From Macrostomum lignano (taxonomy: Eukaryota), in the NCBI GenBank assembly GCA_002269645.1, contig NIVC01001300.1, positions 282,539 to 346,538 on the forward strand: 64,000 nucleotides of DNA. The letters are read 5' to 3'. Both the position numbers and the translations under genes were made by a program. Shown piece after piece: positions 3,841-60,160 of this stretch. The notes under the pieces are model-generated. The model did not search any database. It was not told the DNA's origin and saw only the letters and a list, made by a program, of their open reading frames with translations. Every line of letters begins with the position of its first letter. Position 1 is the stretch's first letter.

Positions 3841-5639
3841 GCTGTTATACTTGTGCACACATGGTAACAGGCCTCTTGATATTTAACTATTGTGTCTGTT
3901 TATAAACTTTTTTGTTCAAATATTTAGGACAATATTGTTACTCCAGTGAAGGTATTACAACAAAGAGGCTATTGTTTTTGTAAATCCAGTATTTTTTCTA
4001 TTGCACGTACGTACAGTGTCTTGGTTTTTATCACATCGGTAAACTCAAATTCTTATGTGCGTATAGATACGCTGTAAATTACATATATATATGCAGCTAA
4101 TACCCATAATCATCATCATATCATTTTATTAAGCCTTCGCAGACAATAAAATACCGGTATTATGATTGCCACTATATCCGCCGGTGAAATATTTACTAAG
4201 GAAACGCCCAGAACGAAATTGTCGATTTTCATTTCCAGGCTGCAAATTGAGTTTGTTTCATCTTGATATTTTTTACGAGTAAAAAAATTGCATAAGGTGC
4301 CTTTCTTATGAAATCAGATGTATATTTTTCTTCTTTTGTTTAGAAATTTTAGCCGAATTCGTCATAATAGACATTGTACAGAACATTCCAATCTGTGTTT
4401 TTTTTTCAACTGAAGTACCGTTCTTCTTTTTGTACAAGTAGAGGTTCAACATACTTTCAACAGCAAAGGGCTGCAATCACTGTGGTCATTGCTATTTTTA
4501 TCTAATTTTATATACAGCTGTTCCAGACCATGAAATGTTATTAGGCTACGGTGTGTACCCTTTTCAATTTTTAACTTTTCAAAAATTGCATTCCTTCAGT
4601 TTATCTGTTTCTTTTTAAGTGAAGTGACTATTTTCGATCTGAAAAATTACAATCGCTGTTACACATTATTACATATATTACTAACGATTCTTTTGTCTTG
4701 GCTTTTCAAAGTACGAACGAAGTGTTATACGGGCATTGGTTTTAGTGATATTTTATCTGAGCAAAACAAAGATTTTAGCTTCCTTTTAAATAGACGAAAA
4801 GAATAGATGAATATCGTCATTCAATAATCGCAAGATGCTCGCCACATTGGGCAGCCCATAGCTCTGCGCATCATAAATATTACTGTTATTGCATGTATCT
4901 TGTTAGTCTTGACAGGACGTCCTTGAAAGGTTGGAAAAAACCGTCCTACGACGCACCGCCCAGATCACGTGACCATCTAGTTGAAGCACCAGCCAGATGG
5001 AGCAGGATGGTGCAGGGTTGTTGCAGCCACAACTACCTGGCGGTTATGACGCTCTTATCAGCTTGGAAGAGCCTGAAAAGATTTAAAATGTGTTAATCAT
5101 TATTTAGCTCTGTGGCAACTACATTAAATTAAAAATTTTTTAACGACTTAAAGGACGCACCAACGCCGTGTTCGAGGACTTCCGGTTATCTCGAACTGCT
5201 AGCAGCGAGCCCGGACTCCATCGTCTTTGACAGGAGCAATCAGGCCTGGCAAGCGGCGCACCTGCTCAGGAACGTTTTTAAATTCAGCTGCGAGGGACGG
5301 CCCTGAAGGTGCGCCTCTTCAGTGCGGCCGTAAAGCCAATCCTTTAGCATGGCATGAAAGCGGTGCCGATGACCGACACGCGAGAGCGAGCCCTGGACGC
5401 GCGGGCTACATGTCCCTGCTGCGCTACGCCCTGGGCATGCACAACCCCGAGAGGCTGCCTTTCAGAACGCCGGCCTACAGAGGGACGTCGAGCAGTTTGT
5501 GCACCAGTGTTCCGTCTGTAATCGACTGCCTGCAGCCACGTAGGCCTATTGAAAATGAGGAATCATTGGCCACCCGCATCAAAAGACCATTGAGAGGGTC
5601 CACATTGACTGGGTATTCGTACAAGAAGCAATAGATCTA

Positions 5640-5875
5640 CTTGTTGGACAGGTCCGCAGCCAATTTAGTGAAATTCTTGAGAACAGTTTTCACTTGGTTT
5701 GGTGTACCAGAGCTCGTAGTTTCTAACAATGGGGGCAAGAGTTCACATCTGAAACCCTGCTATCCGGGCTTTGGACTATTGGAGCGCAAAAATGGAAACA
5801 GCCCCTTACTCGCCGCAGTCGAATGGCACAGCTGAAAGAGCCGTTCAGACTGTAAAAAGAGCTTTGCAAGCTTGA
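5640..5875 (+). mobile_element. Degenerate Gypsy/Ty3 integrase fragment
   Basis: LVKFLRTVFTWFGVPELVVSNNG, then in another frame METAPYSPQSNGTAERAVQTVKRAL; these match the SDNG and PQSNGxAER integrase motifs. Frameshifted. Confidence 0.72.
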
Positions 5876-6002
5876 ACCCCGCGACTAACCCACTCCGATT
5901 TCAACGCCTTTCTGCAGAAAGTCCTTCTCTACCACCGCAATTCATCCAACTCGCGTGGTGCGACGCCTGCTGAACTGGTCTCTGGTCGTCGGCTGCGCGT
6001 CC

Positions 6003-6148
6003 TCATTTAGGCGCCGCATACACTCATTTTGGCGCCGCAGACACTCCTTTTGGCGCCGCGGACGCTCATTTTGGCGCCGCAGACGCTCACTCATTTTGGC
6101 GCCGCAGACGCTCATTTTGGCGCCGCAGACACTCACTCGTTTTGGCGC
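6003..6148. repeat. 21-bp minisatellite (tcattttggcgccgcagacgc), about 7 units
   Basis: Visible tandem units; related to the array at 26593-26953. Confidence 0.85.
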
Positions 6149-6326
6149 CTTAGATGCATTTGGGTTGCTATTAGATGTGCTCAAATAGTGGAGCACCCCA
6201 GAATACTTCACCAGCTTTGGCATCTATATGAGGTCCGTGGAATCGATTGCGATTGCTCAAATTCCTGGGACGTTATCGATTGCAGCTTTGCTGCTAAGCT
6301 CAATGAAAATATTATTTGTTAAAACT

Positions 6327-6533
6327 GTGTTCCTCTTTTCTGAATAGGAGTGTAAATTCCCGCTGGGAAATTTGAGGGCCGTGTGAGCTTTCTAATCGCA
6401 CACAGAAAGTTACGGCATGAATCATATCGCGTGAATGACACACACGCTCACACAAGATCACACAGAGAGCTCACAAAGCCCTAGAATTTCCCGCCGGGAA
6501 CTTACATCTTGCTTTTTTCTAAAAATAGAACAC
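6327..6533. mobile_element. Probable MITE
   Basis: Imperfect inverted repeats tgtaaattcccgctgggaaatttgagggc (6351) and gccctagaatttcccgccgggaacttaca (ending 6506), extended by gtgttc...gaacac. Confidence 0.55.
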
Positions 6534-7177
6534 CTAAATAACAGGCAATTTAGGCTTGCATTTAGCTTGATGCGAGACTTGTTGCTTAATTCAGCCACGG
6601 AATGAAAGCATAGCTTTTACAGTGTATATAGAAATAAAGTTTTATAAGTAGATAAGGAATGCCAATGTAATGAGTAATTCTTCATGTAGTTATTTATGTC
6701 TAGTGTGAAATAAGCGAAGTTCACCTTAGTGTAAATTCCATATAAACTCAATAAATAGAATATTCAGGTGCAAGCTCCCTTCAAGACTATGCGACCTATC
6801 ACTTCACTATTATCTAATCTGAAAGCCCAACAATATCCGTGATTTATCAGTGGCAGGTGATTCATCAGCAATATTTGCAACATATTAGCAACAAAACTAG
6901 TGAGTGTTCGCGCTGTGAATTGTTTTAAACTTAAGCCTATCTTGAGCACATGGATTACATTTTGAACCATTTACACTGAAGGTTTAAAGGCTGCACTCAA
7001 TAGTTTCCTGAGAATCGAGCCCAACTCCAATTTATAGATACATTTAAATTCATATTTATATATCGCTTGAAATTATTCACTGCGTTTGTACACTTATGAG
7101 TACATTCGATGAAGATTGCTGTTTAACTACCTAAGACCTCTAAGACCTCTACCTTTTTCACCTCTAAAGCTTGTAGG

Positions 7178-7856
7178 ATGACATCTGGAGTGCTTCAGCA
7201 GCGGGTTAATCCGAGGCAAAAAATCATAAGGATGCTAATTATGATCGGTTTATCGTCAATTTTGTGTGTAAATGAAGCGATAGGAGGTTCAGGTAAGCCA
7301 AGTTCGCATGAAGAAAAGGTTTTTTTCATTTTACCGCCAATGAACTTGCCGTTACAGGAAATTAGGATTTTCATTAACGATTCCCAACACAGTTGAAGTT
7401 TAGACGTTATGAAATTTAAATGTTATGGAATGATGTTATGATATTTAGGTGTTATGAATTCATGAAAATTCTGTTGCCAATAGTAATTATTCTTCTCACG
7501 CTTAAATGCCTGTTAATAACTTTAGCTTTATGAATATAATTTTTCCACCACTGATTTTCAATATGAAGGTTCTGACGAGGACGCCAACGAATTGGCGCGG
7601 ACGAGGCGAGCCGCCTGCAGCGAGGGCGACTGCAAGAATGGCGGGACTTGCTGGCCGGGTCCTGTGACGTCAAGCACTCCTCCGTGTCTGTGCACTGAGG
7701 CGTACACTGGTACATATTGCACTGTTAGAATAAACTTTTGTGCTACAACCTCCGATGGCAGCACTTCATCAAGCAATCCCTGCCAAAACGGAGGCACCTG
7801 CAGCAACACAGACGCGAGCCCCTGGTATCACTGCAGCTGCGTTTACGGCTACACAG
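7178..7856 (+). CDS. Crumbs-like 5' module B: signal-peptide exon plus a propeptide/2-EGF exon (orphan, or alternative 5' end of C)
   Basis: Exon 7178 (or ATG 7232)-7292, MLIMIGLSSILCVNEAIGGS, donor GTAAGC. Exon 7569-7856, GSDEDANELARTRRAACSEGDCKNGGTCWPG..., closely similar to F exon 42513-42800. Confidence 0.75.
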
Positions 7857-7928
7857 GTGGGTGACCCGCTGTAAATCAAAATGAAAAACTTTAAAAATTA
7901 AAAAACCTAGTAATATCAAAATAGCTTT

Positions 7929-8884
7929 TGATGTAACCGCCCTTGTCGCCTGTCCGCTCCTATTGAGAGACGAACACTTGGCTAGAGGGGGCAATGACCG
8001 TAGGCTGCCTATGACCGGGCAATGACCTGACGGACCTCCAGCACCAGACTGTCCCGCCCACATGATTAGTAGCTTTGGTAGCGCTTCGTGACCAGAGGGC
8101 CAAGGACCCACATGGACCCCACCTGTAGCCAAGGTGCAATAGTTGGTCACTCGGTCATGGTATGACCGAGTGGCTGCCACCACTCTATGTGACCTGGCGC
8201 ACCTGGATCTTTCTACCAGACCTCTCGAGGCTAGAGCCCCGCCTGGATTGGTTACCAGGGGATTTAGGCTAACAGGGGAGACGCATGCAGCCGAGTACAG
8301 GGAATCTGCTTGGGGCATGATCGGGAACTCTGGGCTCAATCCTGGAGGATTTCTCAGCAGGGGATCCTTTGTGGCTGTGAGCGAGGCTGACTTGCGACTT
8401 TGATTACTAAGAGTAGTATGAGGCGAACATGCACTGTCTCCAGTTTAGATTGCTCAGGGCGAAGGGACGCGTTAGCATGGGGTTGCAACCTTCCTACTGC
8501 CATTCTGTGCCAAGACTCGCTAATCCCTCTACTGCACGCACACGCGGCCCCGCAGCACGCACTCACAGGCGGGCTTTGCACGGGGAGAGGCCATTAGCTT
8601 ACCCAAACTTCCTTATGCTTTGCCACCCCGGGAGAAAGGCTTAGCAAGCCATGAGTTAAATGATGGTGAAAGATTGAATAATGATGAAGTTAGTTAATAG
8701 TTAATAATTAGGCCCTTAGGCAAATAAGCAGGCAATTAGGCGGCTTCACTATTGAGTAAAATACAGCAAAAGATGCGGTATCACAATTGGCTCAGCTCTC
8801 TAATCAGACAATGGAAAATAGGCAAACCCCGGATAAGCAAAGGCAATTGGAGCACAAATTAGTAACAGGAACTTACCGGCAGCT

Positions 8885-8919
<35 letters not shown>

Positions 8920-10158
8920 GAGTGACCGAGGGTGGCTGTAGGCTGCAGTCAGGCAGACAGTGAAGCGGCGATGCGCTGGAGCGGCAAGGCGCTGATGTAG
9001 ATCAGGCGATGCTGATGATGCTGGGCGGTATCAGACCGCTGGCCGATAGGCGAGCTCGCTTGGGGAGCTAAGGATAACTTGACGGTAACAGACCGCGGAC
9101 CGGCAGGGATTCGTCTAATAGACGAATGGGTCAGAACTCAGTCTGACGGCAAGTCTAAAGAAAGACTAGGAGCCCGAAGGTGGGCAAAAGTTGAGCATTC
9201 TCATGCCGAAATCGCTTCCTTTTATAGACCTCACAGCCGCCTCCTCAAGGTCGTTACCATGGTTCCCTCTCTCTGATCGGCTGCCGGCAGAATGACGTCA
9301 GAATGAGTCATGATGAGAAGCATGAGACCGGCATAGCAACATGAGAAATAGGGAAATTGCGCAATCCGGAGGTGGGGTGGGGGGATAATTGGCGCAGCGG
9401 GTGGTCGCGAAAGTGTTGCGCAAGCAAACATGGAGAACAATAGGGCTGGGGTCGAGAACAAAGGAATTGGAAATCAGGGATAATTGGGGAAAACTGAGAA
9501 CAGTGGAAAAGTAAACATTAGAGAAAAGGTGATAATTAGGTGCGAAAACGAGAACAAAAGAAAGAGAAAATCGGAGAAAATGTGATAATTGGTGGGGGTC
9601 GAGAGAACAAAAGAATAAAAAACGAGAACAATAGAAGCGGAGGTGGGGTGGGTGTCACATGAGAAATTTGGGAAGGAGAACAATAGCGTGAGAAAAGGTT
9701 GCGCAAGAGAGAGGGATGAGTCATCGATGAGTCACCGAGGGGGAGAAGGGGTCACACGACTTGCGTCACCGTTTGGGAGTTTGAGAGGGGATGGGGAGAC
9801 GGTGAGCACACAAAGTACTGTAAGTAGACACAGGGAAAGAGGGGACAGCGCAGGAAAAGAGTGCAGAGAGAGACAAAAAGAGGGGGAAAGGGAAAGTACA
9901 AGAAGAATAGGGTGGGAGGCAGAAGAGATAGGGTAGAGGGGGAGGTACAGAGAGGGGTGGGGAGCTCCGGAAAGGCAGGTGTGGCGGCAGGGGAGACGGA
10001 ACCAAGGCAGTAGGAGGGGTGCAGCAGAGCGGGAGTCTCCAGGCCTGGGCGGAGACCTGGCCGAGTCTCGACAGCTCTGTGCAGAGGGTGCACGGGATAG
10101 GAGGCACTTTCGAAAAAGTTCCCATGCCCTATCCCGCGACCAGAGCGTGGTTACATCA
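7929..10158. mobile_element. 2.23-kb insertion with TG...CA ends, 10-bp inverted termini and a 4-bp TSD (solo-LTR-like)
   Basis: TGATGTAACC (7929-7938) and GGTTACATCA (10149-10158), flanked by CTTT on both sides (7925-7928, 10159-10162). No recognisable ORF; internal (AG)n at ~8888-8915. Confidence 0.75.
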
Positions 10159-11051
10159 CTTTGTAAAATTGAAACAGCTTAACTTAATTAAACAGTAAAG
10201 GCTGTCTAAAATTATTTTAACTAAAATATTTTTTTCGTGAAATTTAATCAAAATATATATCAAAAAAACATAATACGAGTAGGCTTGTACCAAAGCTAAA
10301 AATCGCTTCGGAAAAATGGCCTAATCTTATCTGATTGTCTGGCTCAGAAAACCAATGTCATTCCATACAATCAGCCACCTCACTGATCTCATCCACCATC
10401 TCACAGATCCCATCCACCATCTTACAGAGCTCATCCACCAACTCACAAGACCATTCCATCCTCTCAGATGCGTCATCAATCAACTCTCAGAATTCCTCCA
10501 GCTCTGACGATTTGTTTTCATTTTTCCCTCCCCGTAATCCAAGCCATCGCTTTAAAATTAAAATACGGAAAAGCTACGAGTAAAAAGTCAATTCTCACCC
10601 TTGTAAAATATTTGTTGTTAACTGCCCGGTTGGAGTCACCACAAAAGCCAGCCACGACGGCATTCGCGCAGCAGCAGTTAAACTCAATGTTCTGATTGTT
10701 TTCCTTTCGAATCCTTTCACAGTACACAGTACATAGATACACAGTACATAGTCTGTGTATGCAAAAAATTTCATACCCAAATGTCTACGGAATTTCCATG
10801 GAATTTCCGTGCAGCGTACAGTGGCGTTTTCTACAGTGTACACTAGTGAACCCATGTTCTTATAAGCAGAATCTCTGTTTCATAAAAAGATCAGAGTCAT
10901 ACTGAAGAAGGTATAAAAATATTATTGTACCTCATTTCAAGGTTGTAATGTTTCTAGTTAGGCAAGTATTCTTTTTTAACCTGCTTCTATTTATTAGTGG
11001 ATATTCTGCTTAGTCTGAGGCATAAACAAGTCAATGACACTGAGAAGAAAC

Positions 11052-14000
11052 ATGGAAAAGGTGAATATTTTCGACATAGAATTTGTGTCCTTACTTTTTC
11101 AGAGAATACATTGGTTTAATAATTCCGCTCCGTGAATTTAGGGCTATAAATTTCAGGCCCAGGCAAAAAAGCTTCATAGCTATATTAATCACAATTAGTT
11201 AATTAAAGTTATTTAAACAAATCAAATTAAAAAGTTTTTGATCTTCTAAAAACCCAGCATTCAAATAACATTTGATGTATTAGAAACAGAAGTAACTGTA
11301 CTCGGATAGGAAAATATATAATTTAAACATTATCACGCGCTTTAACTTCTTAGATTTTTCTTCATTTAAAATTGCAGGTGATTTGCATGGTGTCTTTTTT
11401 CTTGCTGGCCTTTAACCAATATCCGTTTGTTCTTGCTGCTGGCCTGGAGCCGGCACCCTGCGACCCAAGTCTTTACGGACTCAAATGTCAAAACGGGGGC
11501 ACCTGCACGAGCAAAGTTGGCAGCTCGAACTACTCCTGCATTTGTGTGACCGGGTTTGAAGGTAAGTTTTTATGAGCCAAAACTGGAATCGATGGCTGTA
11601 AATTGCATAGAATTTTATTATTGATCATCTTGACTCACCTGCCACCGCTAGTGCGGCGCCGTCACGCAGGGAGATCCTGTGGTGCCGGTGTCAGCAGCGC
11701 AGTCCCATTCGGAGAGTTCAGCAGGTGGATGGCTTTTCGCCCGGTTGTGAACGAGCCTGCAGGACATACCGCCTGTAGGACATGGGACATTCCAGGACAG
11801 TCCATACCGCCTGTAGGACATGGGACATTCCAGGACAGTCCATACCGCCTGTAGGACATGGGACATTCCAGGACAGTCCATACCGCCTGTAGGACATGGG
11901 ACATTCCAGGACAGTCCATACCGCCTGTAGGACATGGGACATTCCAGGACAGTCCATACCGCCTGTAGGACATAGCAAATTACTATCTTTACAATCGTCG
12001 AAAGCATCCGGATTTTAGCCGATGTAGGCGAGCCTGTCCCGAGTAAAGGTGGGGCAGCCATAGATGAAAGACTCCACATTCTCACCACCTGAAAGGCAGA
12101 ATTGGTATTTCTCACTGCGGATTTTCCTGTAGGTAGCATTGCTTACTAAATCAGCCATGACTCCCAAAAGGGTCACTATGGCTACCGCTCTGATACTCCT
12201 GATAAAAGTCATGGGCGTCTCGTTGCCACCCACTGTTGAATCCAAGTGATAACAATAAGCAGCAATCTTGTTAAATGCCTAACGAATGCTTGTACTTTTA
12301 ATTAAAAAAAACTAGGCAGACACTGCGAAATCAACATCAACAACTGCGCAAGTCACCCATGTATAAACGGGCTGTGCTCAGACTTGGTGAATGACTACAG
12401 CTGCAGCTGCTACCGAGGCTGGCAAGGCAGGAACTGCAACGTCGATCACAATAACTGTTTCTACGGCGCCTGTCTCAATGACGGCCGCTGTCTTGATGGC
12501 AATGAAACGTAGGTGAACAGATATGCTCATAAAATTAATTTATCGATATAATTTTTCTAAGGTTCTTTTTGCACATAGGCTTTCTAAATTTTGCAACATT
12601 TACCATTACTCTGATGGTTGCAACAAATAACTGCAGATACAGTCAAAGCTTTCTTAAACCTACAAAAAATATACCGAAATGTGTGTATCCTCGACAGATT
12701 CACCTGCAACTGTTCTGACACGGGATTCAATGGCTCCAGATGCGAGGTCAACATTGATGACTGCGCCAGCAAGCCCTGCGCCAACGGCCTGTGCACGGAC
12801 CTGGTGAAAGACTACAGCTGCAGCTGCTTCACAGGCTGGGAGGGCAAGAACTGTTCAGTGGACACCGACTACTGCCTGTCAGGGCCCTGTCAGAACGGTG
12901 GCGTCTGCAGCGACGGAAACTCCACGTGAGTGGCTCTGAGCATATCTAGGAATTATAATTACATTAGATTTTTTTAATTTTAGCGTAATATAAAGTGCTA
13001 AAATGTTGAAAAAATGTTTCTTTACTTGAAAAGTAGATGAACAAAGCCTTATGTTTTCCAACGCCACACAGTAAAAAAAGCTACAACTTTTGCAGAGCTA
13101 CTACAGATTTCTTAGCCTCCCCTGCTGCAATTATTGATTCATTTTATGCAACAAAAATGCTGCAGATTTAGCTGCGATTGCACCAGCATCGACTTTCAAG
13201 ACTCAACCTGTAGCTCGTGGATTGATAACTGTCTGTCAAGTCCCTGTCAGAACGAAGGGAAGTGTATCGATGAAGTCAGAAATTACACCTGCGACTGCAC
13301 AGATACAGGGTTTACTGGGGACTGGTGTGAGAACAAAATAAATGAGTGTTATGACCAGCCCTGCATCAATGGCCTTTGCATTGACCTGGTGCAAAACTAC
13401 AGCTGCACCTGCTTCACAGGCTGGGAGGGCACAAACTGCTCCGTAGATACGGACTACTGCCTGTCAAAGCCCTGCCGGAATGGCGGCGTCTGTAAGGACG
13501 GAAACTCAACGTAAGTTGCGTGATTCTAGTTGGTACAAAACCAAACTGTAACCAAAATGTATTTGTAGCTAACTGGTTTCAAAACTTACAGATACACCTG
13601 TGACTGCTCTCGCGTTGACTTCCAAGGCGACACCTGCAGTTCCAAGATCGAGGACTGCGCGTCGAGCCCGTGCCAGCACGGCGGCGGGTGCACCGATGGT
13701 GTCAGGAGTTTCACCTGCGACTGCCTGCCCGGCTACGAGGGCCCGACCTGCTCAGTCGACATCAACGAGTGCGAGCGGTTCGGACAGCCGTGTCAGAACG
13801 GAGACGTCTGCAAGGACCTGGTAGCGGATTATGCCTGCACCGGCTGCCCCGCTCACTTCGGAGGCAAAAACTGCTCCGTGCTGCTTCCACAGTACTCGTT
13901 CGGCATAAGCGGACTTGTATCGTCTGCGAGTTTCGCTTCTCTGCCAAATGCGTCAAGTGTGTCTGGCGGAGACTCGTGGACGATTGAGCTGAGGCTGGTG

Positions 14001-17000
14001 ACTTTGTCTCGAGGAGCGTTTCTGCTGCTGCTGGGCGACCCGAGCGACTCGGCGACCACTCCGAGACTGCTCGCTACGGTCAGTGTCCTTAATGGTTCTT
14101 TTTTCTGGATTTAGTGCGATCTTTCAGTTTGTTAAAATCTTTTCAGATCGATCGTTCTGGCCGTCTGTCCGCCCAGTTACTGCACAGCAACGGCTCCGAT
14201 ATCGCAGCGCTGACGTCCTCAGACTCGGTGGCTACCGGCAGCTTCGTCTCCGTGAAGATCTCTGTGTCTATATCGGGTCGCTCGCTGTCGCTGTCAGTGT
14301 CATCTTCAGTCAGGTCGGCATCGCTGAGCAGTGCGAGTCCGCTGCCGCAGCTGTCAGGCCAGCTCATCATCGGCGGTTTTAACGGTGCCACGGCAGCATC
14401 GGCTCCGCCTTTGAGCCGCAATGACAGATCAAGAAGATCCGTTTGGGATCCTAATTTATCTTCATCTGTAGCCAATGTTACTGCATTTCGAGGTATTATT
14501 GGCTCGACCAGGATCAATGGAATCACAGCTTTACTTCTCAGCTCCCCAGCAGCAACGCTACAAGAAAGTTTTCCTGGAGCAATTAAACCGAGCGGCTCAA
14601 CAAATGTGGTTCTTGGAAAACTGGCCGAAAAAGTCTGCGAGCGTTTCAAGCCTTGTGAGAACGGAGCGACGTGTCACGATATTTTCTACAACAATTTTGT
14701 GTAAGTTCGCTGGTGTTGCCTTTCTGCATGTTTCGATCGTGAATAAAGTATATGGCTGAGTAACCCACTGGTACGAGCTACATACATGTACTCCCAACTT
14801 TTAGCTGCGAATGTCATTCGGGCTACCACGGCAAGGACTGCTCCAAGGACATTCCGGACTGCGACCTCAATCCTTGCGGAGAAGGTTTCTGCTGTTTCGA
14901 AAAAAGCAACGCCTCATTGTACAACAGTTCGGACCTTCCATCGCCCTTCAACAGTTCGTTTAGCTTTTCGCGTGCGTCCGGCTCTGTGTGTTTACCTGGC
15001 TGTGAAGAATCACGATTCACAAGTACGCCTTTTTCTGCATGAGCCATTGCATGCTATTATCTCATTTCTATTTTTGTATAGCAGTTTTGCAAACCCAAGC
15101 CATGTCCCTTACAAATAGGCTCTTCTCTCTAACTGCTTTCTCCTGCTCTTGTCTTTATTCTTCAACCATAATGAACGACTGAATTTAGTCTCAGAAAAGT
15201 AGTATAATGCCTAACCCTCTTCTCTGCTTTTGTCTTACTGCATTACTGACTTCTTACTGCCTAAACACAGTCCAATGATTGTTGTTTATCATTATGTTGC
15301 ACTGTGGTGGTACCTTCTTAGTGTGCCTTTGAAACAGTAAACAGGCAGAGGGTAAACTTGTTTTTCTTGAGAAATTCGGGCGAGTCATTTGCCAGAAAAG
15401 CTTGATTCGCAATACGATATTGTTTAAAATAATTATTCACAAATGTTTAGTATGCTATGTACGTGTAGATTTCACACCTATCAGAACTTTATTAGTCCAT
15501 ATACAAATTTCTTGCACAAACTTTATTATCCCATGCACAATTTTGAGCGATGAATCATTTTTATATTAATTTCAGTACTGTCTCCCACTCTATTTTTCAC
15601 TCCTTACAAGGTTCAGCCGCGACGCAAGTGACGGAAGGCTCACTATCTGCATTGAAAGACGTATATATCGCCACCTCAGCAATTTTTTCTATATCTGCTG
15701 TCCTCGCGTCGTTGTTCGCATGGCCTAAATTAAAAAATCGGTGTTGGAATAAAAATGTTAGCAAAGATTTTATTTTATGTTTTTTTACGATTTCCAATGA
15801 GCCACTCGAAACTGTGAACTTCGATTGATGGGGCTGGATTTTAGCGAGTCTTTATCACCAGGGGCTTTAGCACCAGGTGCTTTAGCACCAGGGGCTTTAG
15901 CACCAGGGGCTTTAGCACCAGGGGCGCAAGCACCAGGGGCGCAAGCACCAGGGGCGCAAGCACCAGGGGCGCAAGCACCAGGGGCGCAAGCACCAGGGGC
16001 GCAAGCACCAGGGGCGCAAGCACCAGGGGCTTTAGCACCAGGGGCTTTAGCACCAGGGGCGCAAGCACCAGGGGCGCAAGCACCAGGGGCGCAAGCACCA
16101 GGGGCGCAAGCACCAGGGGCGCAAGCACCAGGGGCGCAAGCACCAGGGGCGCAAGCACCAGGGGCGCAAGCACCAGGGGCGCCAGCACCAGGGGCGCCAG
16201 CACCAGGGGCGCCAGCACCAGGGGCTTTAGCACCAGGGGCGCCAGCACCAGGGGCTTTAGCACCAGGGGCTTTAGCACCAGGGGCTTTAGCACCAGGGGC
16301 TTTAGCACCAGGGGCTTTAGCACCAGGGGCTTTAGCACCAGGGGCTTTAGCACCAGGGGCTTTAGCACCAGGGGCTTTAGCACCAGGGGCTTTAGCACCA
16401 GGGGCTTTAGCACCAGGGGCTTTAGCACCAGGGGCTTTAGCACCAGGGGCTTTAGCACCAGGGGCGCCAGCACCAGGGGCTTTAGCACCAGGGGCTTTAG
16501 CACCAGGGGCTGTAGCACCAGGGGCTTTAGCACCAGGGGCTTTAGCACCAGGGGCTTTAGCACCAGGGGCTTTAGCACCAGGGGCTTTAGCACCAGGGGC
16601 GCAAGCACCAGGGGCGCAAGCACCAGGGGCGCAAGCACCAGGGGCGCAAGCACCAGGGGCGCAAGCACCAGGGGCGCAAGCACCAGGGGCGCAAGCACCA
16701 GGGGCGCCAGCACCAGGGGCGCCAGCACCAGGGGCGCCAGCACCAGGGGCGCCAGCACCAGGGGCGCCAGCACCAGGGGCGCCAGCACCAGGGGCGCCAG
16801 CACCAGGGGCGCCAGCACCAGGGGCGCCAGCACCAGGGGCGCCAGCACCAGGGGCGCCAGCACCAGGGGCGCCAGCACCAGGGGCGCCAGCACCAGGGGC
16901 GCCAGCACCAGGGGCGCCAGCACCAGGGGCGCCAGCACCAGGGGCGCCAGCACCAGGGGCTTTAGCACCAGGGGCGCCAGCACCAGGGGCGCCAGCACCA

Positions 17001-18050
17001 AGGGCGCCAGCACCAGGGGCGCCAGCACCAGGGGCGCCAGCACCAGGGGCGCCAGCACCAGGGGCGCCAGCACCAGGGGCGCCAGCACCAGGGGCGCCAG
17101 CACCAGGGGCGCCAGCACCAGGGGCGCCAGCACCAGGGGCGCCAGCACCAGGGGCGCCAGCACCAGGGGCGCCAGCACCAGGGGCGCCAGCACCAGGGGC
17201 GCCAGCACCAGGGGCGCCAGCACCAGGGGCGCCAGCACCAGGGGCGCCAGCACCAGGGGCGCCAGCACCAGGGGCGCCAGCACCAGGGGCGCCATTGCCA
17301 AAGTAATTGTTGGGGAACGCTAAAATGGGTAACAGTGGCGCCACGGTTGCTGGAAAAAGGGCGCAAATATTTCAGCCTGGCAACGTCCCTCTCTCTCTCA
17401 TTCGCTCTTATATCAGTAGTCAGCATTATTCTAATGAATTTTAACCACATGGCGTTGTTTCCTTTAATGTTTTATTATATGACAGAGACCGGTGGAGGCG
17501 GGGCGCACAGCACCCGTGGCAACTGAGTTAGGCAGACTGCCTGATTCAACTTATGCGGTTGCTGACCGACAACACGTATGACTTCCGCTCAATGTGCTGT
17601 TATTTTATTGATAAAAAATTATTGTAGCGTTCATTGAATACTTTATGAATTTATAATCCGTTTCCTACACAGGAAAGTACAATTGTCACCGGAGAATATG
17701 ACTATATCGGATCGTCTGGACAAAATGTTAGTGACATTTGCTTATTCTTTAACAGTATTGAGTCATTTGCAAAGAATACATAAGCAAACTAAACGAACGA
17801 TACACGCTTAATTCACTAGGTGGCCGATATAGTTCAGACTCCTGCTGAAGCAGCGACAAACAGCGGTTGGCAAGATGATTCACAGCCGGGTCAACAGGCG
17901 CCAAAACCGAGGCCCAGAGTGGAGCTATTTAACCCTGATGGGGAAGCTAGCGCTGAATCATATGCGAAACTGGATATCGTGTATGTGGATATCAAAGGCA
18001 CAAATAATGCGGAAGAATTACCCCAAAATTCAGTGAGCAGAGATGATTAA
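11052..18050 (+). CDS. Crumbs-like paralog C (~912 aa): signal peptide, 10 EGF, LamG, 2 EGF, TM, long Tyr-motif tail
   Basis: Exons 11052-11060 (tentative MEK), 11378-11561, 12316-12508, 12698-12925, 13166-13510, 13592-14078, 14147-14700, 14805-15022, 15611-15756, 17486-17575, 17673-17726, 17820-18050. All phases agree, total 2739 nt, no internal stop seen. [22 protein letters not shown]. The donors at 15023 (GTACGC) and 15757 (GTTAGC) are weak. Confidence 0.78.
11765..11974. repeat. 38-bp perfect tandem repeat, about 5.5 units, intronic
   Basis: Unit cataccgcctgtaggacatgggacattccaggacagtc starts at 11765, 11803, 11841, 11879, 11917 and 11955. Confidence 0.95.
15855..17294. repeat. 15-bp minisatellite (gcaccagggg + cgcca/cttta/cgcaa), about 96 units, in the intron after the TM exon of C
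   Basis: Directly visible; it generates the spurious GAPGA/PLVLA ORFs. Confidence 0.97.
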
Positions 18051-18330
18051 ATATACTCAGCAACATTGAAAAGTCGCAACTCTGTGCTCCAGTGAGAAAT
18101 TTCTCTTGGACTATTCTGAAATAAAAGTTACGAGAAAACTAACCGGGGTAGCTTTAATCCGTCCAACCCTCGCACACCGCTCCCCCACTTCATTCCTCAA
18201 CTCAAGTCTGCCGAGGCGTAGCTGAGTTGCGTCACTCGCAAAGATTGAGAGACTTTACCTGCTCTCTCAAAAGTGGCGACCGCGGAAGGAATCTTCCATG
18301 ATGGGGACTTTTCAATGTTGCTGAGTATAT
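18051..18330. mobile_element. 280-bp MITE with 25-bp TIRs and TA-type ends
   Basis: atatactcagcaacattgaaaagtc ... gacttttcaatgttgctgagtatat; an inverted second copy lies at ~2109-2360. Confidence 0.85.
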
Positions 18331-19005
18331 CAATACCTGTTCAAACGTTTGTATAAAAGATTTACCTCTTGGTTTTTTATCTTTGTCTGTGGTCACATTT
18401 GATTAAATTTACAAAAGTATCAACTGTTTCGTAGCAATGATTTGTTTTCATTTTTTCCGCATCTCATACTTACGTATTACTAGTACCTGGTAGCAACTCT
18501 TTGCCACAAGCGGACAAAAAGGTTGCATAAATTTACCACGCGAAATATTGTAATTTGCTGTTTTTCTGAAGCTTCTCAGTATGAGAAAGCGTACATTATT
18601 TACAGCTTTGTTGGCAAAACAGTAACTGCAGCTTTTCGCCTAAATTACAACTGTCATCTTAGTTACCAAAGAAAAGTCGGGTTTTTTATACTCGCTTTAA
18701 GGATTCAAACTGCAGCATATTATAACCTTAACTATAAATTACACAAACACATCGAAATGCACAGATGCGACAACAGAGATCACACTTTACTCATCGACGT
18801 TCATCAACTGATAAAGTCATAAAGTATATTCATAAGAAATGCCAGACATTGTCAATTTAGCTGACAAATTTAAGATGCCAAAAGTTACTAAAGTAACTTC
18901 TGTCGGTAAAATTTCAGTTGATCAAACTAAATAGCACTAAGCACGAGTACATTATACTCGACTAATTGAGGAGAATTTTTGCGTGAATAGAAATATTGCT
19001 TATTT

Positions 19006-19078
19006 GGCACGACAGCCCAGTGGTCTGGCGCGGCACTCTTATGTGTCAGCGGCCCAGGCTCGATTCCAAGTGCAGCCA
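19006..19078 (+). pseudogene. Degenerate tRNA-like sequence, possibly a SINE head
   Basis: 73 nt with an A-box-like CAGCCCAGTGG and B-box-like GGCTCGATTCC at tRNA spacing, ending GCCA. Acceptor and T stems are mismatched and no anticodon can be assigned. Confidence 0.38.
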
Positions 19079-20651
19079 CATTAATTTAAGATTAAATTGG
19101 AATCTCGGCTTGGCTCTTTAACACCTTTGAGGGACAACTGCAAGGAACAGTGAAGTGTACATGCTTAGCAATAAAAAGAGTTAGGGCCGCTGTACACTCC
19201 TGTGTGATGTGTGCCTGCGCGTATGACTGCGTACGTATCTTGTGTGCCTGCTCAGGGGAGTCTGCAGAATAGACAGTAATGCACCTCTCGCCGGTTGTGT
19301 GACAATGTCGCTTAAAGTGCACCAGACTACACACAGCCGCCCACCCTGTCTCTAATAAAAGATGCCTCCTTAGATTTTGACTGAGGGGTTTTAAGGTTTT
19401 AATTTACTCGCACAAATTGAAAGGCTTTGTGTTCTTCAACAGATACTCACATTATAAATTGATGCCGCGTTCTCGCTTAAAAGCACTCAAGTACGTTTGA
19501 ATAATGAGCGCACGAACCCAGCGTCGCACCCAAGTGGTAAAATAAACACTTCTTAAACGGATTACTCGTACATTTTCATAAACAGGTTTAATAGGCTAAA
19601 AATAGCTTCATTAACATCCTATTTTTCAGTGTGGATTGCCTAGCATGCCTTAATTAACAAGTTTTCTGTTGATCTTTTCTTAACAAACTTGTTGCTTATT
19701 TGGGCCGCTTGAGTCATGCGCTTTCACGCAAATCAGAAACGCAGTGGAAAGGGTTTTAGCCCAGCCCGTGTGCTTTCTATCAACCTGGCAATATACGGTA
19801 AGCTGTTTACAGAAGCGGAATGTTTGAATTGAGGATACTAAATTTCTCTATTTAGCTTGCTTCTTTTTTTAGATATACAGTATGGGAGCACAGAAATTTT
19901 CGCATTGATAGCTAGAGTTGCAATTCAATATCAAGCACAATTATATTTTGTAACTCGTATAAATTTAACGGTCATCAAATTAGGAGTATCTCTGAGCGAA
20001 GTCTGCAAAGAAATTGAAATATTATATTTTTCAATAATTTTTTCTAGACAATAAATTGGAGCGGAAAAAGCGAAAAATGAAAAAGGTAACGACATACTTC
20101 TCTTACTGGCATATTTTTTCGCTTTACTTTTTAATGTAAAATATGGCTCTCCATTTAATCAAGCCGAGCAAATAATAACAAACGAATCGCTTTTTTCACT
20201 GTTTAGGAAAACTCTTTTATAAAAGACACATGTAGCAACTTCTGAAATTCCATCGGAACCCTACTAGCTTAATTTTTCTGTTCTTACGTCTAGTTAATAA
20301 CATCTGTAAAAAGTAGCTTAGTAATTATAAACCAGAGTTAATATCCATCCAGGCAAAACGCATACACTTAAGATTGCAGCTTGCGGTTCAATATGGTAGC
20401 TTTCAAAGGTTTGTCAGTGAAGATTTGTCAATAGGAACCAAAATACAAAAAATGAAGCTTTTCCAGCGAAATAAATTTAAGCGAGAAAAGCAGTTTTCAA
20501 GTTACGACATTAACCGTCAGTAATATACAGCATGCCAGCTTAGCTCACAAATAGTATTGCTGCACTAAATTGTAAATTACTTCAGAGCGTCTCGGAAACT
20601 GCTGGTAAGCTGCAGTTCCAGGAAAGTTTTATCAGCACTGGTTCGTTGGTG

Positions 20652-23600
20652 ATGATGTTTCTTTTCATTTCTTTGTCGACTACTTTCTCGTGTAAGTATG
20701 TTTAGATATGTTCTGATGTACACGCACCTCTGAATAAAAAATTGGCAGATTATTATCTAGTTCAGATAGACCTATTTCTTTTTTTTCAGCTGTATCATCT
20801 GTTCAAAAACTTAAGTCGTGCACATACAGTAGCTGCAAGAATGGAGGCTATTGCTGGCCACACCCAACTGATACATCACCTCCTTGTGTGTGTCCTGAGC
20901 CGTATTCGGGCTCACATTGCACAGTTCGTATCAAATACTGTTCAACAGAACCATCTAAGTGCCAGAACGGAGGCACCTGCAGCAGCAAAGATTCCAGTCC
21001 CTGGTACAGCTGCAGCTGCGCTCCCGGATTCACCGGTGAGTCAATAGCTATTCAAACCTGTGTTTTTTTAAGTTTTGATTATAAAAACATCAGGTAATTG
21101 CGTGAGGAATGTCAGTCCTAGAATTTCAATCAAGCACTAGCCGACACAAATTTGGTAAGCTGTGGGATACCTGTCAGATTATTTCTAAACGGGGGCTTCA
21201 TCTACATTACTGACCTATTATACGTATCGATTTTTCAGTGGTGGTGAACTACGAGTGTAGCTAAAACTGATGGTTACGTAGAATTTTCTTAAATAATCAT
21301 TTACCTTTACGAAATCACGGGACGGTTACTCAGTTGCTTCACTACTGCTATAGTGGTGTAATCGTGATTTCGAATTGGCAGAAGTTGTATTAATTATAAT
21401 CTCAGGTTATTGCAACCACTTTTAGGACCCTAATAACTTGCTGACACAATAGGCAACGAAGGCTAACAAAATACTATACGAGCGTAGATTTTCGCGATAA
21501 GAAGACGGATGACGAGTGACCAGAGTCTTCCAGTCCAGTCCCTTTGTCGGGTATTAACTTTTACTGTCGTTTAATTTTTGATAGTTGTTGACAGCGTATG
21601 GATAGCATTTTGTTAAAAATATTGAAATGAGAAGCCAGACTGCATTGGTGAAATAACTTGGACGGTATCGCACAAACTTTAGTCAGCTAGCTAAGTTTTG
21701 GTATGTTGGCACTTGTGTTATTTCTGACCAATGTCAGCTTGCAGACTACGTGAATGTAATCCGACACGCCTATTTAACTGACATCTGGGCGCGTCTCATG
21801 TATACGGAATGAGTGTACATGATGCTCGACCAACAAGCCAATTTGTCACAAAAACCTCACATTTTTTACATTGTTTTTTCATGGAATTGAACTCCAACAC
21901 TAAAATTAAATGGGACTGTTTTGAAACTTAGCCATAGGGTGTCATAACATTGTAACATCACAAGACAAAACGAACTATTTTACCACATGACCTGAAATGA
22001 CGTGCTATGAAAAATGAAAACTGGCATGAAATTAAGTATTAATGCATTGATATGCATCCGCTCCTAGAAAGCAAATTAATGTAAAGAACCTAGTAGGAAA
22101 GGAAAACAGCTTAATCATTAGAACACTATGCTACTCCTCCCTTGGTCCGGCAATAACCAGCATTCGTTTGTAACCGAAATCACATGAGGTACAAAATAAA
22201 TGAGAAGATTGTGCAGTTGAGAAGCAAACTTAATTCGCATGAAAAAGTATTTTACAGCAAAATTATGCAAATTATATAAGCAGAGTTCACCTCAGTGAAA
22301 ACACATAGCGTTCTAAAGTTACAAAAAAGAGAAAAAATTGTTGGAAAATCAGTACCAGCCTCTGAAATAAAATATTTAATTTGGTCCTGTTTTTGCTGGC
22401 TATTTTCCACTGCAGGTCAGAACTGCGAGACGAACATTGACGATTGCCAGCCGAACCCGTGCAAAAACGGAGCGACATGCATCGATGGCATCAACTCGTA
22501 CAGCTGCAAGTGCTACGATGGATTTGACAGTACAGACTGCTCCAATGAAATAATTGATTGCACGCCAAACAGGTGTCACAACCATGGCATCTGTTTAGAG
22601 CGCAGCAACAAATACCTCTACGAAAAGCCCTCACTTCCGCCGCCATTCAACGGCACCTTCAACTACTCCCTAGCAGCTGGCTTTGTCTGCCAGTGTCCGA
22701 AAGGTGAGATTAAATTGATGAAGCATTACTGCCTTACTGCCAACAAATGCCTGCTGTAATAATATTTCTAAAACTACAGACTATCGCGATGACTACAATG
22801 ATAACTAATAGCGCAATCTAAATCTTAGGTAAATTATAAATCTGTTGACACGGACACCATGAATTAAAATAGAGTCGATGTGTTAAACAAAAAAAAATTG
22901 CTTTCTTAAAATCTAGCAAAATTAAGACTTAAGTTGAGAAAAATAAAATTTTCAGACTAGAAATTATTATTGTAATTTAAAATTCCTAAAAGCTGAAACG
23001 ACCCAAATATTGTATTAACAAACTACAATCATTGTACCATTCGCTAAATCGCTAAATTATCATCAATTTCGCTGCTGCAAAACGGCTCTGCATCCAACTT
23101 TATAGCATCGAATTTTGCATACTTTGCCTACGGTAATGCTTTTCCTTGAAAATCACAGAGTTTCATATATTTAGTCTGTTTAAACCCAAGATTTGGTCAG
23201 ACTTTCAGCAAAAGGTCTTCGTAGATCACGTTAAATTATTGGCTTCTACTGAAAACTACCAAAGTAAAATATTTCAAAACCTCTTTTCTGTCGTATATGC
23301 TAATAAAAAAAAATTCACTAGTAAGCATAGAACACTCAAAAAATACTACGCTCGGAGCTAATAAGAGGAAAGTTACACAAATCGGGGTCACTAATAGCTC
23401 TGCCAGCTATTACCACTTGCAAAATACTTTTTAACAGGAGCCTACGGAGACACGTGCTCCATCAACCCGAACGACTGTCTGAAACCGGACACCAACCGCA
23501 GCGTGTGCGCTCACGCGTCGAGCTGCACGGATGGCCTGGCCTCATTCACCTGCCACTGCCTGCCCGGCTACGAGGGCCCGACCTGCTCAGTCGACATCGA

Positions 23601-25783
23601 CGAGTGCGAGCGAGTGCCTTGTCAGAATTCGGAGCCGTCTGCAAGGACCTGGTAGCGGATTATGCCTGCACCGGCTGCCCCGCTGAGTTCGGAGGCAAAA
23701 ACTGCAGCGTCAGACTGACTGGCTGCGACTCCAGCCCGTGCCAGAACAATGCTACTTGCGAGCCGCTGCTTCTTCAGGAGCTGCCGTCACCTGCTCACGG
23801 ACATCGCTGCACCTGCAAGCCTGGCTGGTCTGGACCGCAGTGCAACGAGACCACTCTAGTTTCATTCAGCGGGACGTCCAGTTTCAGCGCCAATTTCACC
23901 ACAACAGCTGACTGCACTTTCGAGCTGTCGTTCCGCACGACTCTCGCCCACTTCGACCTGGTCCGGCTCTCGTCTCACTGGGGAGACATCCGAGTCGGCG
24001 CTCACGACTCCAGTCTCGTGCTGTTGTTCTTCAATGCCTCATCGTCTGTGATTGGTCGAGTCGCTTGGCCAATCAGTGACAGCTTGGCCTCTGCTGATTG
24101 GCTGACGCTGTCGGTCTCGCTGACCAATGGCAGTGCGACATTGAGTCGCAGTGAGTCGGGAGTGAGTCAGCTGCCTCGAGCACAGCTGGTCGACGGTCTG
24201 TCGGACTCATTCAAGCCGAACAGTCGAATGTCGGTTCGTGTCGGCGGCGAGAGCGGATCCGGCATCGACGGCGGCGGCTTCCGCGGCTGCGTCAGAGACC
24301 TGCGGCTCGTGACGAACGACTCGACATTGGTAGCAACGGAGACCACGGCGGAGTCGAGCAACGCGTCCTGGGGAGTCTGCAGTCGGTCGGTGCAGTGCGG
24401 CAGCCCGTCGCCTTGTGAAGTAAAGACGAGCTCGATGTGCTCAGATGTGTGGAATGACTTTGTGTGCCACTGCGCTGCGGACTTCGGAGGTCAAAACTGC
24501 TCTGTTGAGCTTCCATCGTTCTCACTGGGTGTGGGCGGCAGCGTGTCATCAGCGAGGTTCGCGTCTGCAGCAGGTGTGTCAAGTGTGTATGGCGGAGACT
24601 CGTGGACGATTGAGCTGAGGCTGGTGACTTTGTCTCGAGCAGCATTTCTGCTGCTGCTGGGCGACCCGAGCGACTTGGCGACCACTCCGAGACTGCTAGT
24701 TACGGTCAGTGTCCTTGTGGTGCTCCTCTGTAGATGTTCAAGGTGTTTTAAAGTCAGTTTTTGCTTTAAAATCTTTTCAGATCGATCACGATGGCCGTCT
24801 GTCCGCCCAGTTACTGCACGGCAACGGCTCCCTCATCGCAGGGCTGACGTCCCCAGACTCGGTGGCCAATGGAAGCTTCGTCTCAGTGAAGATCTCCGTG
24901 TCGATATCGGGTCGCTCACTGTCGCTGTCAGTGTCATCTTCAGTCAGGTCGGCATCGCTGAGCATTGCGAGTCCGCTGCCGCAGCTGTCAGGCCAGCTCA
25001 TCATCGGCGGCTTCAGCGGCGCCAAGCCAGCTCCAGCTCCATCGTTTAATCCCAGCAGGCGATCAAGACGATCGCTGGCGTCACTGCCAACTGCCGTTGC
25101 TCGGCTTCTTTCATCAAATATTTCTGCGTTTCGAGGTGTTATAGGCGCCACTAAAATTAATTCAGACCGGGCGTTGATCCTCAAACAAAACGATTCCAGT
25201 TGGACCGACAGGCTTCCAGCAGCCATTGTTGCCAGCAAGTCAGTAGGAGTCGCTTTATCTCTAAAGTTGAAACTCGTTGCGAGACTTCAAAATCTTGTCA
25301 GAATGACGCTACGTGTTGGAATTTTTTCTTTGTCACGTATAGGTAAGTTTATTAGCAATAGCTAATAAAATAGTCATTTATCATCGCACGTGAGTCCGAA
25401 CTGTTGCAGGTGTGAGTGCGCAGCTGGGTGGCACGGTCCCACGTGTTCTGAGCCGGACTCTATAACAAGGATTCAAAACAAGACTCACCGCCTAGAAGTG
25501 CGAGTGCCTTGATCGCAGGAATTGTTTCATCCACGATCATTATCATTGGCGCCTGCATTGGTGAGTCCGTTGTTTCACATAACTAACGAGCGAGGCTTCG
25601 TTATTCTGTTTAAATTCATTTTCACCTGCAGGTACTCTTGTTTTCCTGAAGCTCCGACGAGCTCACGAAGTGAAGCATCGAGGTCCGTGGGACAGATTCG
25701 ACTTGAACGGCCCAACCGGTGTTCGAGTTGGACACCTGAGACCGGACGGAATGCCGCCGTGTCCACAGGAGGTGTTTTTCTGA
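20652..25783 (+). pseudogene. Crumbs-like paralog D (signal peptide, 7 EGF, LamG1, EGF, LamG2, EGF, TM, 'PQEVFF' tail) with three frameshifts; pseudogene or assembly errors
   Basis: Exons 20652-20691, 20790-21035, 22416-22703, 23438-24704, 24781-25342, 25410-25560, 25632-25783. Frameshifts at ~23629 (+2, giving TAG at 23653), ~25253 (-1 in a T run) and ~25455 (14-nt insert). Crumbs signature [38 protein letters not shown]. Confidence 0.8.
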
Positions 25784-26592
25784 GCAGTCGATTGGTTCCT
25801 GTCAGTTAAGAAAAATCAGGCTGCTATTATTGTTGACATCCCATTGATTGTAGACATCTTAATTCCTTTACCATTTACCGAAATTCTAATTTTCATTAAG
25901 CAAGTACTTGGGCCCCACATCTTAGCTTATTCTCATTTGAAAAGATCTACGTCTCTACGAGTACTTAGCTCCGTCATTTATTTAAAAAATGTTTATGTAC
26001 GTTTCTTGGGTGCAGAATATCCAGAACCTTCTTAAAGCGCGATAGACTATTTTAAGATTCACAAAATCTCATTGCTTCATCCCCTTGAGTGTTCTATTAT
26101 AAATTTACTTTAGGATTTTTCACGCTGGATCTCAGGCTCTGGCCAGCCTAACTTTCTTTTTTTGAAATTCGGCTTCTTTATTTTTATTATTTTACGCTCG
26201 AATTTGAACAAGGTAACAGAAATATTTTGACAGCTTTTACCGTAAAATCAATGCAGACGGAAAGGTATTTTTATATGAATTAAATACGCCTCTACTGCGC
26301 TGGTGTTCGGCGGCCAAGGTTTTCTTTATCTAGAGAAATTATAAGCAATGTACATGACAACAAAACCAGTGCCCGGTGCCCTATGACCTCACACAATTGA
26401 CGGCTTAAAGGCTTTTTTGTGCCATCGAATAGCATCAAACAACTCCAACGGTGTACACAGGCCATGTAATTCAAAATTTGCCTTCCTTTATGGTGACGTG
26501 ATTACAAATGGTTTTGCCATGGTTTTTTAGTGGGGGAAAAAGTCAAGAATTCTACCTGTACATGTACGTTATTTCCAGAATCGGTGTTGTCA

Positions 26593-26953
26593 GCGCTCAT
26601 TTTAGCGCCGCAGGCACTCATTTTAGTGCCGCAGGCACTCATTTTAGCGCCGCTGGCACTCATTTTAGCGCCGCTGGCACTCATTTTAGCGCCGCTGGCA
26701 CTCATTTTAGCGCCGCTGGCACTCATTTTAGCGCCGCTGGCACTCATTTAAGCGCCGCTGGCAGTCATTTTAGCGCCGCTGGCACTTATTTTAGCGCCGC
26801 TGGCACTCATTTTAGCGCCGCTGGCACTCATTTTAGCGCCGCTGGCACTTATTTTAGCGCCGCTGGCACTCATTTTAGCGCCGCTGGCACTCATTTTAGC
26901 GCCACTGGCACTCATTTTAGCGCCGCTGGCACTTATTTTAGCGCCGCTGGCAC
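26593..26953. repeat. 21-bp minisatellite (tcattttagcgccgctggcac), about 17 units
   Basis: Directly visible; same family as 6003-6148. Confidence 0.93.
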
Positions 26954-28998: not shown

Positions 28999-29170
28999 TA
29001 TGAAATATTGGCATTTTTCAGGCTCTCTTCCATCAATACTTCTGCGTGCGCAACTGCTTCCTCCTGACTAAGCTAATGCCTCTTCTAGTAACTTATAATC
29101 ACTTAATACCACCAGAAAACTTAGAAAAGACAAAGTACTGAAAATAACTAATAATTTACTTGCATTGTCC

Positions 29171-60145: not shown

Positions 60146-60160
60146 AACGGTCATGTCATG

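Follow-up and report, generated by a model that had tools for sequence, protein, structure and literature searches.

A predicted EGF/laminin-G receptor gene with a three-exon tyrosine-bearing tail in a tandem array of Macrostomum lignano

The cytoplasmic tail of Crumbs proteins is 37 aa long, contains a FERM-binding site and ends with ERLI. The EGF-repeat receptors Draper/CED-1/MEGF10 and PEAR1 possess tails with tyrosine motifs, and nephrin has a pYDxV docking tail. In the tandem array of Hydractinia Alr genes, some tails carry an immunoreceptor tyrosine-based inhibitory motif (ITIM) or activation motif (ITAM), and the tails are more diverse than the ectodomains (PMC9546547). Here, we describe gene C, one of several EGF/laminin-G single-pass receptor genes arranged in tandem in a 64,000-nucleotide window of the genome of the free-living flatworm Macrostomum lignano (Mlig_3_7 contig NIVC01001300.1, GenBank assembly GCA_002269645.1); all positions below refer to this window unless another locus is named. 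The initial annotation of the window proposed that gene C combines a Crumbs ectodomain with an ITIM-like inhibitory tail encoded by three exons and belongs to a paired-receptor-like arrangement. Our analysis indicates that gene C is probably an intact, unannotated member of a Macrostomum-specific receptor family, with a generic phosphotyrosine or sorting tail and not a demonstrable ITIM. The family is already present in databases as hypothetical proteins, and gene C itself is new.

The model of gene C (7178-18050, + strand) contains 12 exons and 982 codons without an internal stop; it begins with an ATG and a signal-peptide-like sequence and ends with TAA, and all its introns are of the GT-AG type. 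The features of the model are listed below, where a slash marks an exon border, TM means transmembrane and P numbers denote M. lignano proteins of the family.

7178-7292, + strand: candidate exon 1, ATG and signal-peptide core MLIMIGLSSILCVNEA; donor CAG/gtaagc, phase 1
7569-7856, + strand: exon 2, N-terminal EGF repeats; 77% identity to P0001 (tblastn)
12316-12508, 12698-12925 and 13166-13510, + strand: exons 3-5, EGF repeats; GT-AG borders, phase 2
13592-14078, + strand: exon 6, EGF repeats and the start of laminin-G
14147-14700, + strand: exon 7, the remaining part of laminin-G and the start of an EGF; donor TGT/gtaagt, phase 2
14805-15022, + strand: exon 8, juxtamembrane EGF plus EGF-with-insert, typical of the class with tyrosine-bearing tails (Tyr-tail class); donor CAA/gtacgc, phase 1
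15611-15756, + strand: TM exon, whole helix and basic stretch; acceptor acaag/GTT, donor AAT/gttagc, phase 0
15757-17485, + strand: intron of 1729 nt, mostly a 15-bp minisatellite
17486-17575, + strand: tail exon 1, 90 nt, 30 aa, phase 0; gacag/AGA ... CAC/gtatga
17673-17726, + strand: tail exon 2, 54 nt, 18 aa, phase 0; cacag/GAA ... AAT/gttagt
17820-18050, + strand: tail exon 3, 231 nt, 76 aa and TAA; acceptor cactag/GTG; contains ESYAKL and DIVYVDI

Joining of exon 1 to position 7569 in phase gives the sequence ...GGSGSDEDANE, which is colinear with P0001, P0002 and P0067, and gene C was found to be colinear with P0001 using tblastn. The first two nucleotides of the TM exon complete the AGT codon split at position 15022, and this exon ends on a whole codon. 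The TM helix consists of 21 residues with a mean Kyte-Doolittle value of 1.95; five lysine or arginine residues are located in the next 15 residues and one before the helix, so the positive-inside rule holds. It was confirmed that the three tail exons join in frame in phase 0 after the TM exon, with GT-AG borders and a stop-free frame, and that each of them carries a tyrosine motif. They contribute 124 residues to a cytoplasmic part of 135 aa, which ends with ...NSVSRDD and is acidic and probably disordered. The short introns of the tail (97 and 93 nt) have a GC content of 0.30-0.32 versus 0.39-0.60 in the exons, as in the rest of the family. Donors of the tail exons are in the 92nd-97th percentile of all GTs nearby, the TM exon donor is in the 96th, and the acceptors of the tail exons are in the 98th, 94th and 77th percentiles of all AGs. 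An in-frame alternative to the last acceptor, ttcag/ACT at position 17838, leaves the frame and the motifs unchanged.

The possibility that the tail exons belong to a separate gene, which the initial annotation had named as a potential refutation, was rejected along with that of a minus-strand gene: the exons contain no Met, lie on the same strand as the preceding exons with fitting phases, face no competing open reading frame (ORF) on either strand (the longest antisense ORF is 51 aa) and share their layout with the paralogs. No terminal exon of the other tail type of the family, which ends in EVFF, was found downstream of gene C. The best reading of these exons is that they form the predicted C-terminus of gene C.

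The comparison with transcribed paralogs carries the main weight of this assignment. GenBank models of M. lignano genes were obtained from a genome-guided transcriptome assembly (StringTie/TACO with de novo transcripts and TransDecoder; PMC5730564). Three such proteins, namely P0001 (BOX15_Mlig025742g2), P0006 (BOX15_Mlig022007g1) and P0007 (BOX15_Mlig017317g1), were mapped to their loci. Their 3' layout was the same as that of gene C, including a juxtamembrane EGF-with-insert exon, a TM exon with the whole helix and three short tyrosine-bearing exons, and all mapped tail borders were in phase 0. The lengths of the encoded segments are as follows.

Gene C: TM exon 49 aa; tail exons 30, 18 and 76 aa
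P0001: TM exon 44 aa; tail exons 24, 25 and 42 aa
P0007: TM exon 43 aa; tail exons 24, 26 and 45 aa
P0006: TM exon 36 aa; tail exons 38, 30 and 49 aa

P0006 additionally has 11 residues (GKLSLGYFERQ) between its TM exon and its first tail exon that lie outside the mapped exons; they are absent from the homeolog fragments P0121 and P0122. At the place of the 1.7-kb satellite-filled intron of gene C, the three paralogs have introns of 87-201 nt. Exon 8 of gene C showed 49-59% identity to exons of P0001, P0006, P0007 and P0003, and its best DNA match was the P0006 exon. In both gene C and P0006, tail exon 1 has a tyrosine exactly seven residues from its end (TYAVADRQH/ and TYLTSDRRP/), the next exon starts similarly (ESTIV and EISTV) and a YD[YV]I motif is present, and tail exon 2 of gene C resembles the P0006 exon EISTVERYEMAPYDVIS... 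Judging by these comparisons, the 3' module of gene C is probably the Tyr-tail module of the transcribed paralogs P0001, P0006 and P0007, and the predicted gene structure is well supported. In addition, about 350 codons of gene C, from the second half of its laminin-G exon through the juxtamembrane EGF and TM exons to the tail, show only 35-50% identity to any paralog and are still open with intact splice sites, which argues for constraint.

At least three other Tyr-tail lineages exist besides gene C. Elsewhere in the genome, this class is represented by two tandem copies of P0001, by P0006 in three homeolog forms (P0121 and P0122 among them) and by P0007. Selection on the Tyr tail is not measurable from the P0001 copies, since these are about 98% identical and too recent. 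The second P0001 copy (positions 26416-33918 of locus L002) follows the annotated one and is not called as a gene; it retains all four Tyr motifs, and its last intron is 220 nt long versus 2471 nt in the first copy. In another locus (L003, NIVC01000114.1), P0067 (positions 1-9462; partial, N-terminal half) directly adjoins P0007 (positions 10001-12765; partial, C-terminal half) on the same strand, and these two models probably represent a single Tyr-tail gene.

The four other genes of the array end with ...GPTGVRVGHLR..P.PQEVFF (terminal exons 3760-3837, 25634-25780, 35058-35210 and 52939-53091), and only gene C is Tyr-tailed in the window. The PQEVFF end is presumably a class II PDZ-ligand-like sequence; it is also loosely similar to the PPPEERLI end of Crumbs. 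In the EVFF class (P0004, P0002, P0005 and the window genes), the TM segment is split by an intron and followed by a single terminal exon, and a multi-exon Tyr tail is absent. Thus, the initial description of the other members as PDZ-type is correct for the window, but genome-wide gene C is not the lone Tyr-type member, as P0001, P0006 and P0007 show.

Despite their different tails, members of both classes have nearly the same outer part. The distal ectodomain of gene C (240 residues; exon 6 and the first half of exon 7) showed 95% amino acid identity to P0001 (Tyr-tail), 95% to P0002 and 92% to P0005 (both EVFF-tail). The C-terminal half of exon 7 is only 35-50% identical to any paralog, and the membrane-proximal half, TM and tail as a whole are 35-50% identical or unrelated to the paralogs. 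At the DNA level, positions 13586-14440 of gene C and 51522-52382 of an EVFF-tail gene are 91% identical over 863 bp, intron included, up to a point within the laminin-G exon. This tract looks like the result of gene conversion or recombination with a break before the class-specific 3' module. The family probably evolves as a mosaic, in which distal ectodomains are homogenised between neighbours while the membrane-proximal parts and tails (Tyr or PQEVFF) stay distinct.

The tyrosine contexts of the tails were evaluated with composition-preserving shuffles. In the tails of gene C, P0001, P0006 and P0007 taken together, Y-[A/D] occurs at 12 of 21 tyrosines, which was reached in 0 of 20000 shuffles; the motif patterns were picked after the sequences had been seen, so this and the other four-tail statistics below are suggestive only. 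With this limit, the contexts are non-random over the four tails. The tyrosines of gene C appear to belong to Y-[A/D]-x-Φ sequences and to be preceded by acidic residues, and Y-D-x-[IV] resembles the ligands of Nck- or Src-type SH2 domains. If gene C is expressed, ligand-driven clustering could lead to phosphorylation of the tail by cytoplasmic tyrosine kinases, and the phosphorylated tyrosines would serve as docking sites for SH2 or PTB domains; in addition or instead, unphosphorylated YxxΦ motifs could bind AP-2 and direct endocytosis. Flatworms are reported to possess SH2-containing cytoplasmic tyrosine kinases, among them Src- and Syk-type enzymes (PMC2820527, PMC3135232).

Among the alternatives, the tyrosines could be YxxΦ sorting signals for the μ subunit of AP-2/AP-1, responsible for endocytosis or polarised delivery, and not phosphotyrosine docking sites. 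The pattern Y-x-x-[LIVMF] fits three of the five tyrosines of gene C (YDYI, YAKL and YVDI), which was observed in 2.8% of shuffles (p=0.028), and eight such motifs were found in the four tails versus 3.4 expected (p=0.011); moreover, the motifs are located in an unstructured tail well off the membrane. However, none of the five tyrosines of P0001 fits the pattern, acidic residues flank all five tyrosines of gene C (p=0.026), and a Y-A/Y-D bias would rather be expected in kinase-substrate or SH2 motifs. Purely sorting tyrosines seem to be an unlikely explanation, and the two functions are not mutually exclusive.

A number of results weigh against an intact gene with a functional tyrosine tail. 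In a database of 5.8 billion protein clusters, no protein contained the gene C tail or 3' half, and no transcript-derived model or orthologue of gene C was found. When the last exon was compared with 1.84 billion representatives using phmmer, six weak multi-stretch matches were obtained, all of which were judged to be spurious (the two inspected were repeat proteins). The similarity between the tails of gene C and P0006 did not reach significance in Smith-Waterman shuffles (p=0.06; other pairs were not significant) or in BLASTP (E=0.11); the known Tyr-tail members are equally dissimilar to one another in their tails. A log-likelihood test of codon usage, with exons of the family as the training set, gave known tail exons no better scores than AG..GT-bounded control ORFs and was therefore uninformative. 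The last acceptor (cactag/G, 77th percentile) is weak, the content of five tyrosines in 135 aa (3.7%) is ordinary, and the post hoc choice of motif patterns was mentioned above. The annotation dropped novel transcripts below 0.5 reads per kilobase per million (RPKM; PMC5730564), so gene C may be silent or very weakly expressed. In other searches, the spliced TM exon and tail used as a protein query had no match, the four-tail profile matched only homeolog fragments of P0006 and P0007, four other M. lignano loci contained no homeolog of the tail and no DNA or protein match to the TM and tail of gene C, and nothing relevant was found in the literature under the locus tags or on Crumbs-like genes of Macrostomum. 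Overall, the gene structure exceeds chance, and the motifs alone are weaker evidence.

Alternatively, gene C could be a silent or recently inactivated duplicate, whose tail is not expressed or not spliced as modelled. As predicted in the initial annotation, the frame of the unspliced TM exon does end nearby, at TGA 15826-15828, and read-through would produce a 34-aa tail without motifs. Besides the weak last acceptor, this explanation is favoured by the absence of any annotated protein covering the 3' half of gene C in an RNA-based annotation and by two repeats flanking the tail exons, namely a G-rich minisatellite of 1.44 kb in the preceding intron and an element resembling a miniature inverted-repeat transposable element (MITE) at the stop codon. 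Against it, the 982-codon frame is open including the approximately 350 unique codons, and the read-through stretch has an intron-like GC content of 0.32. The missing annotation of gene C is only weak negative evidence, because the intact EVFF-tail gene at 20738-25780 is likewise unannotated, paralogs with 92-95% identity hamper read assignment through multi-mapping, and transcripts below the RPKM threshold were dropped. A silent or inactivated duplicate is considered rather improbable, about as much as tyrosines devoted to sorting alone.

The minisatellite (15856-17294) consists of 95.9 copies of the 15-bp unit CACCAGGGGCGCCAG; on the sense strand of the gene C intron, GGGG runs thus recur at 15-nt intervals. 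The minisatellite is open in four of six frames, encoding (APGAP)n and similar sequences, and a coding (APGAP)n exon was considered and rejected, as it would not join the TM exon in frame and the repeat is dispersed in both orientations. The same minisatellite was found at 38867-39280 (-), 40290-40821 (+) and 60159-60389 (-), i.e., at four sites in all, which points to a dispersed non-coding repeat. The second element is as follows.

18051-18331, strand not assigned: MITE-like element directly abutting the TAA of gene C, with 25-nt perfect terminal inverted repeats ATATACTCAGCAACATTGAAAAGTC

It contains the sole AATAAA (18120) after the gene C stop, and a diverged copy is located at 2108-2358 (-). 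The element may supply the 3' untranslated region and poly(A) signal of gene C, or it may have clipped the original C-terminus.

The proposal that IVYVDI is a working ITIM recruiting an SHP/Csw-type phosphatase, with gene C as the inhibitory partner of a paired-receptor system, fared less well. IVYVDI (17976-17993) does fit the consensus [SIVL]xYxx[IVL], and three matches were found in the four tails versus 0.6 expected (p=0.02). In addition, the distal ectodomain is common (92-95%) to members with a different tail, and ITIM/ITAM tails are known in other invertebrate tandem arrays such as Hydractinia Alr (PMC9546547). However, IVYVDI is the sole match in the gene C tail, and at least one match appeared in 16% of shuffles of this tail. 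It is opposite gaps in the other three tails in a MAFFT alignment without statistical support, and the paralog motifs SAYDVI and SPYAGV are not positionally equatable to it, as the alignment is not significant. No second ITIM or immunoreceptor tyrosine-based switch motif was found at the spacing used by tandem SH2 phosphatases. The ITAM pattern Yxx[LI]-x6-12-Yxx[LI] had no match in the tails of gene C, P0001, P0006 and P0007; in gene C, the gap between YAKL and YVDI is only three residues, so the initial annotation was right that an ITAM is excluded by spacing. No activating counterpart with a charged TM residue or an ITAM was found, the members of the other class ending with PQEVFF. A functional ITIM in gene C thus appears very doubtful.

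As for the paired-receptor-like arrangement, its structural half stands, since the distal ectodomain is shared between both tail classes and the tails are unrelated, but its activating half was not found. As an analogy, a paired-receptor-like mosaic is partly supported and structurally apt. A true system of this kind, in which gene conversion would keep a common ligand-binding EGF/laminin-G end and the 3' modules would link the same recognition event with PDZ/polarity scaffolds in the PQEVFF members or with phosphotyrosine signalling in the Tyr-tail members (in gene C possibly through an SHP-recruiting ITIM), is highly improbable.

The window contains at least five EGF/laminin-G single-pass receptor genes, which are arranged head-to-tail on the + strand. 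Gene C has been described above; the others are listed below.

truncated by the window start, ends at 3837, + strand: gene A, EVFF-tail
20738-25780, + strand: unnamed gene, EVFF-tail, apparently intact
29284-35210, + strand: P0004 (BOX15_Mlig014908g1), EVFF-tail
42419-53091, + strand: P0005/P0002-like gene, EVFF-tail

P0004 is encoded in the window, and its locus L001 is identical to positions 18703-45213. The paralog at 20738-25780 has no GenBank gene call, and no gene is called in the whole region 18703-28702. Within the 4.4-kb second intron of gene C, a possible alternative first exon encoding one EGF was found at 11387-11560; its donor (GAAG/gtaagt, phase 1) is compatible with exon 3 at 12316, and it resembles the first exon of P0004. 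It may be a second 5' end of gene C or a relic. Near the end of the array, an inverted repeat of about 400 bp with 99% identity (56017-56418 versus 60149-59749) adjoins a laminin-G exon fragment (60416-60736) and one of the minisatellite copies, which suggests a rearranged gene remnant. More long tandem-repeat blocks are located at 26500-27050, 47660-48800 and 62739-64000; one of them, which is G/T-rich, lies inside an intron of the gene at 42419-53091. These blocks are consistent with the 15% of simple and tandem repeats reported for the M. lignano genome (PMC5730564).

The locus presents a lineage-specific receptor family that combines near-identical outer ectodomains with two unrelated cytoplasmic modules and thereby clearly illustrates how 3' modules are exchanged and how a tandem array evolves in a mosaic, concerted manner. 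Expression of gene C would add a missing receptor gene to the annotation of M. lignano, which serves as a model for regeneration and stem-cell research. The locus also supplies testable candidates for flatworm phosphotyrosine signalling or endocytic receptors. If a true paired-receptor system were present, its logic would have been invented independently on a non-Ig, Crumbs-like scaffold; the locus alone does not demonstrate ITIM-type inhibitory signalling outside the usual lineages.

In a protein search, the closest proteins to the 3' half of gene C were all M. lignano paralogs. The best matches outside Macrostomum include vertebrate CRB1 and CRB2, with an identity of about 24-27% across roughly 60% of the query. 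The Pfam analysis revealed EGF and Laminin_G_2 domains; in gene C, EGF domains passed the threshold, and Laminin_G_2 in exon 7 was just below it (20.7 bits versus a cut-off of 22.9). From these matches, the initially proposed Crumbs ectodomain is a fair description in the sense of a Crumbs-like ectodomain, but gene C does not appear to be a Crumbs orthologue. Like Crumbs and CRB1-3, it is predicted to cross the membrane once and to combine EGF repeats with a laminin-G domain; unlike them, it has a 135-aa Tyr-motif tail ending with SRDD instead of the short FERM/ERLI tail. With Draper/CED-1/MEGF10 and PEAR1, gene C has in common a single pass, EGF repeats outside and a probably disordered multi-tyrosine tail inside. 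It differs from these receptors and from nephrin in that its tail contains neither NPxY nor an ITAM, and a sequence relationship with them was not detected.

The family of gene C is similar to vertebrate paired receptors and Hydractinia Alr in its tandem arrangement, in ectodomains that are more conserved than the unalignable tails and in the presence of some Tyr motifs. In contrast to those systems, its ectodomain is of a non-Ig type, no ITAM is present, the single ITIM match is not above chance, and the other tail is PDZ-ligand-like and not activating. The EVFF neighbours are related to gene C through the same tandem array, the same strand and a distal ectodomain with up to 92-95% identity (P0002, P0005). 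P0001, P0006 and P0007 resemble it along the whole architecture, from the EGF/laminin-G ectodomain and the juxtamembrane EGF-with-insert to the TM exon and the Tyr-rich tail exons with their Y-A and Y-D-x-I contexts.

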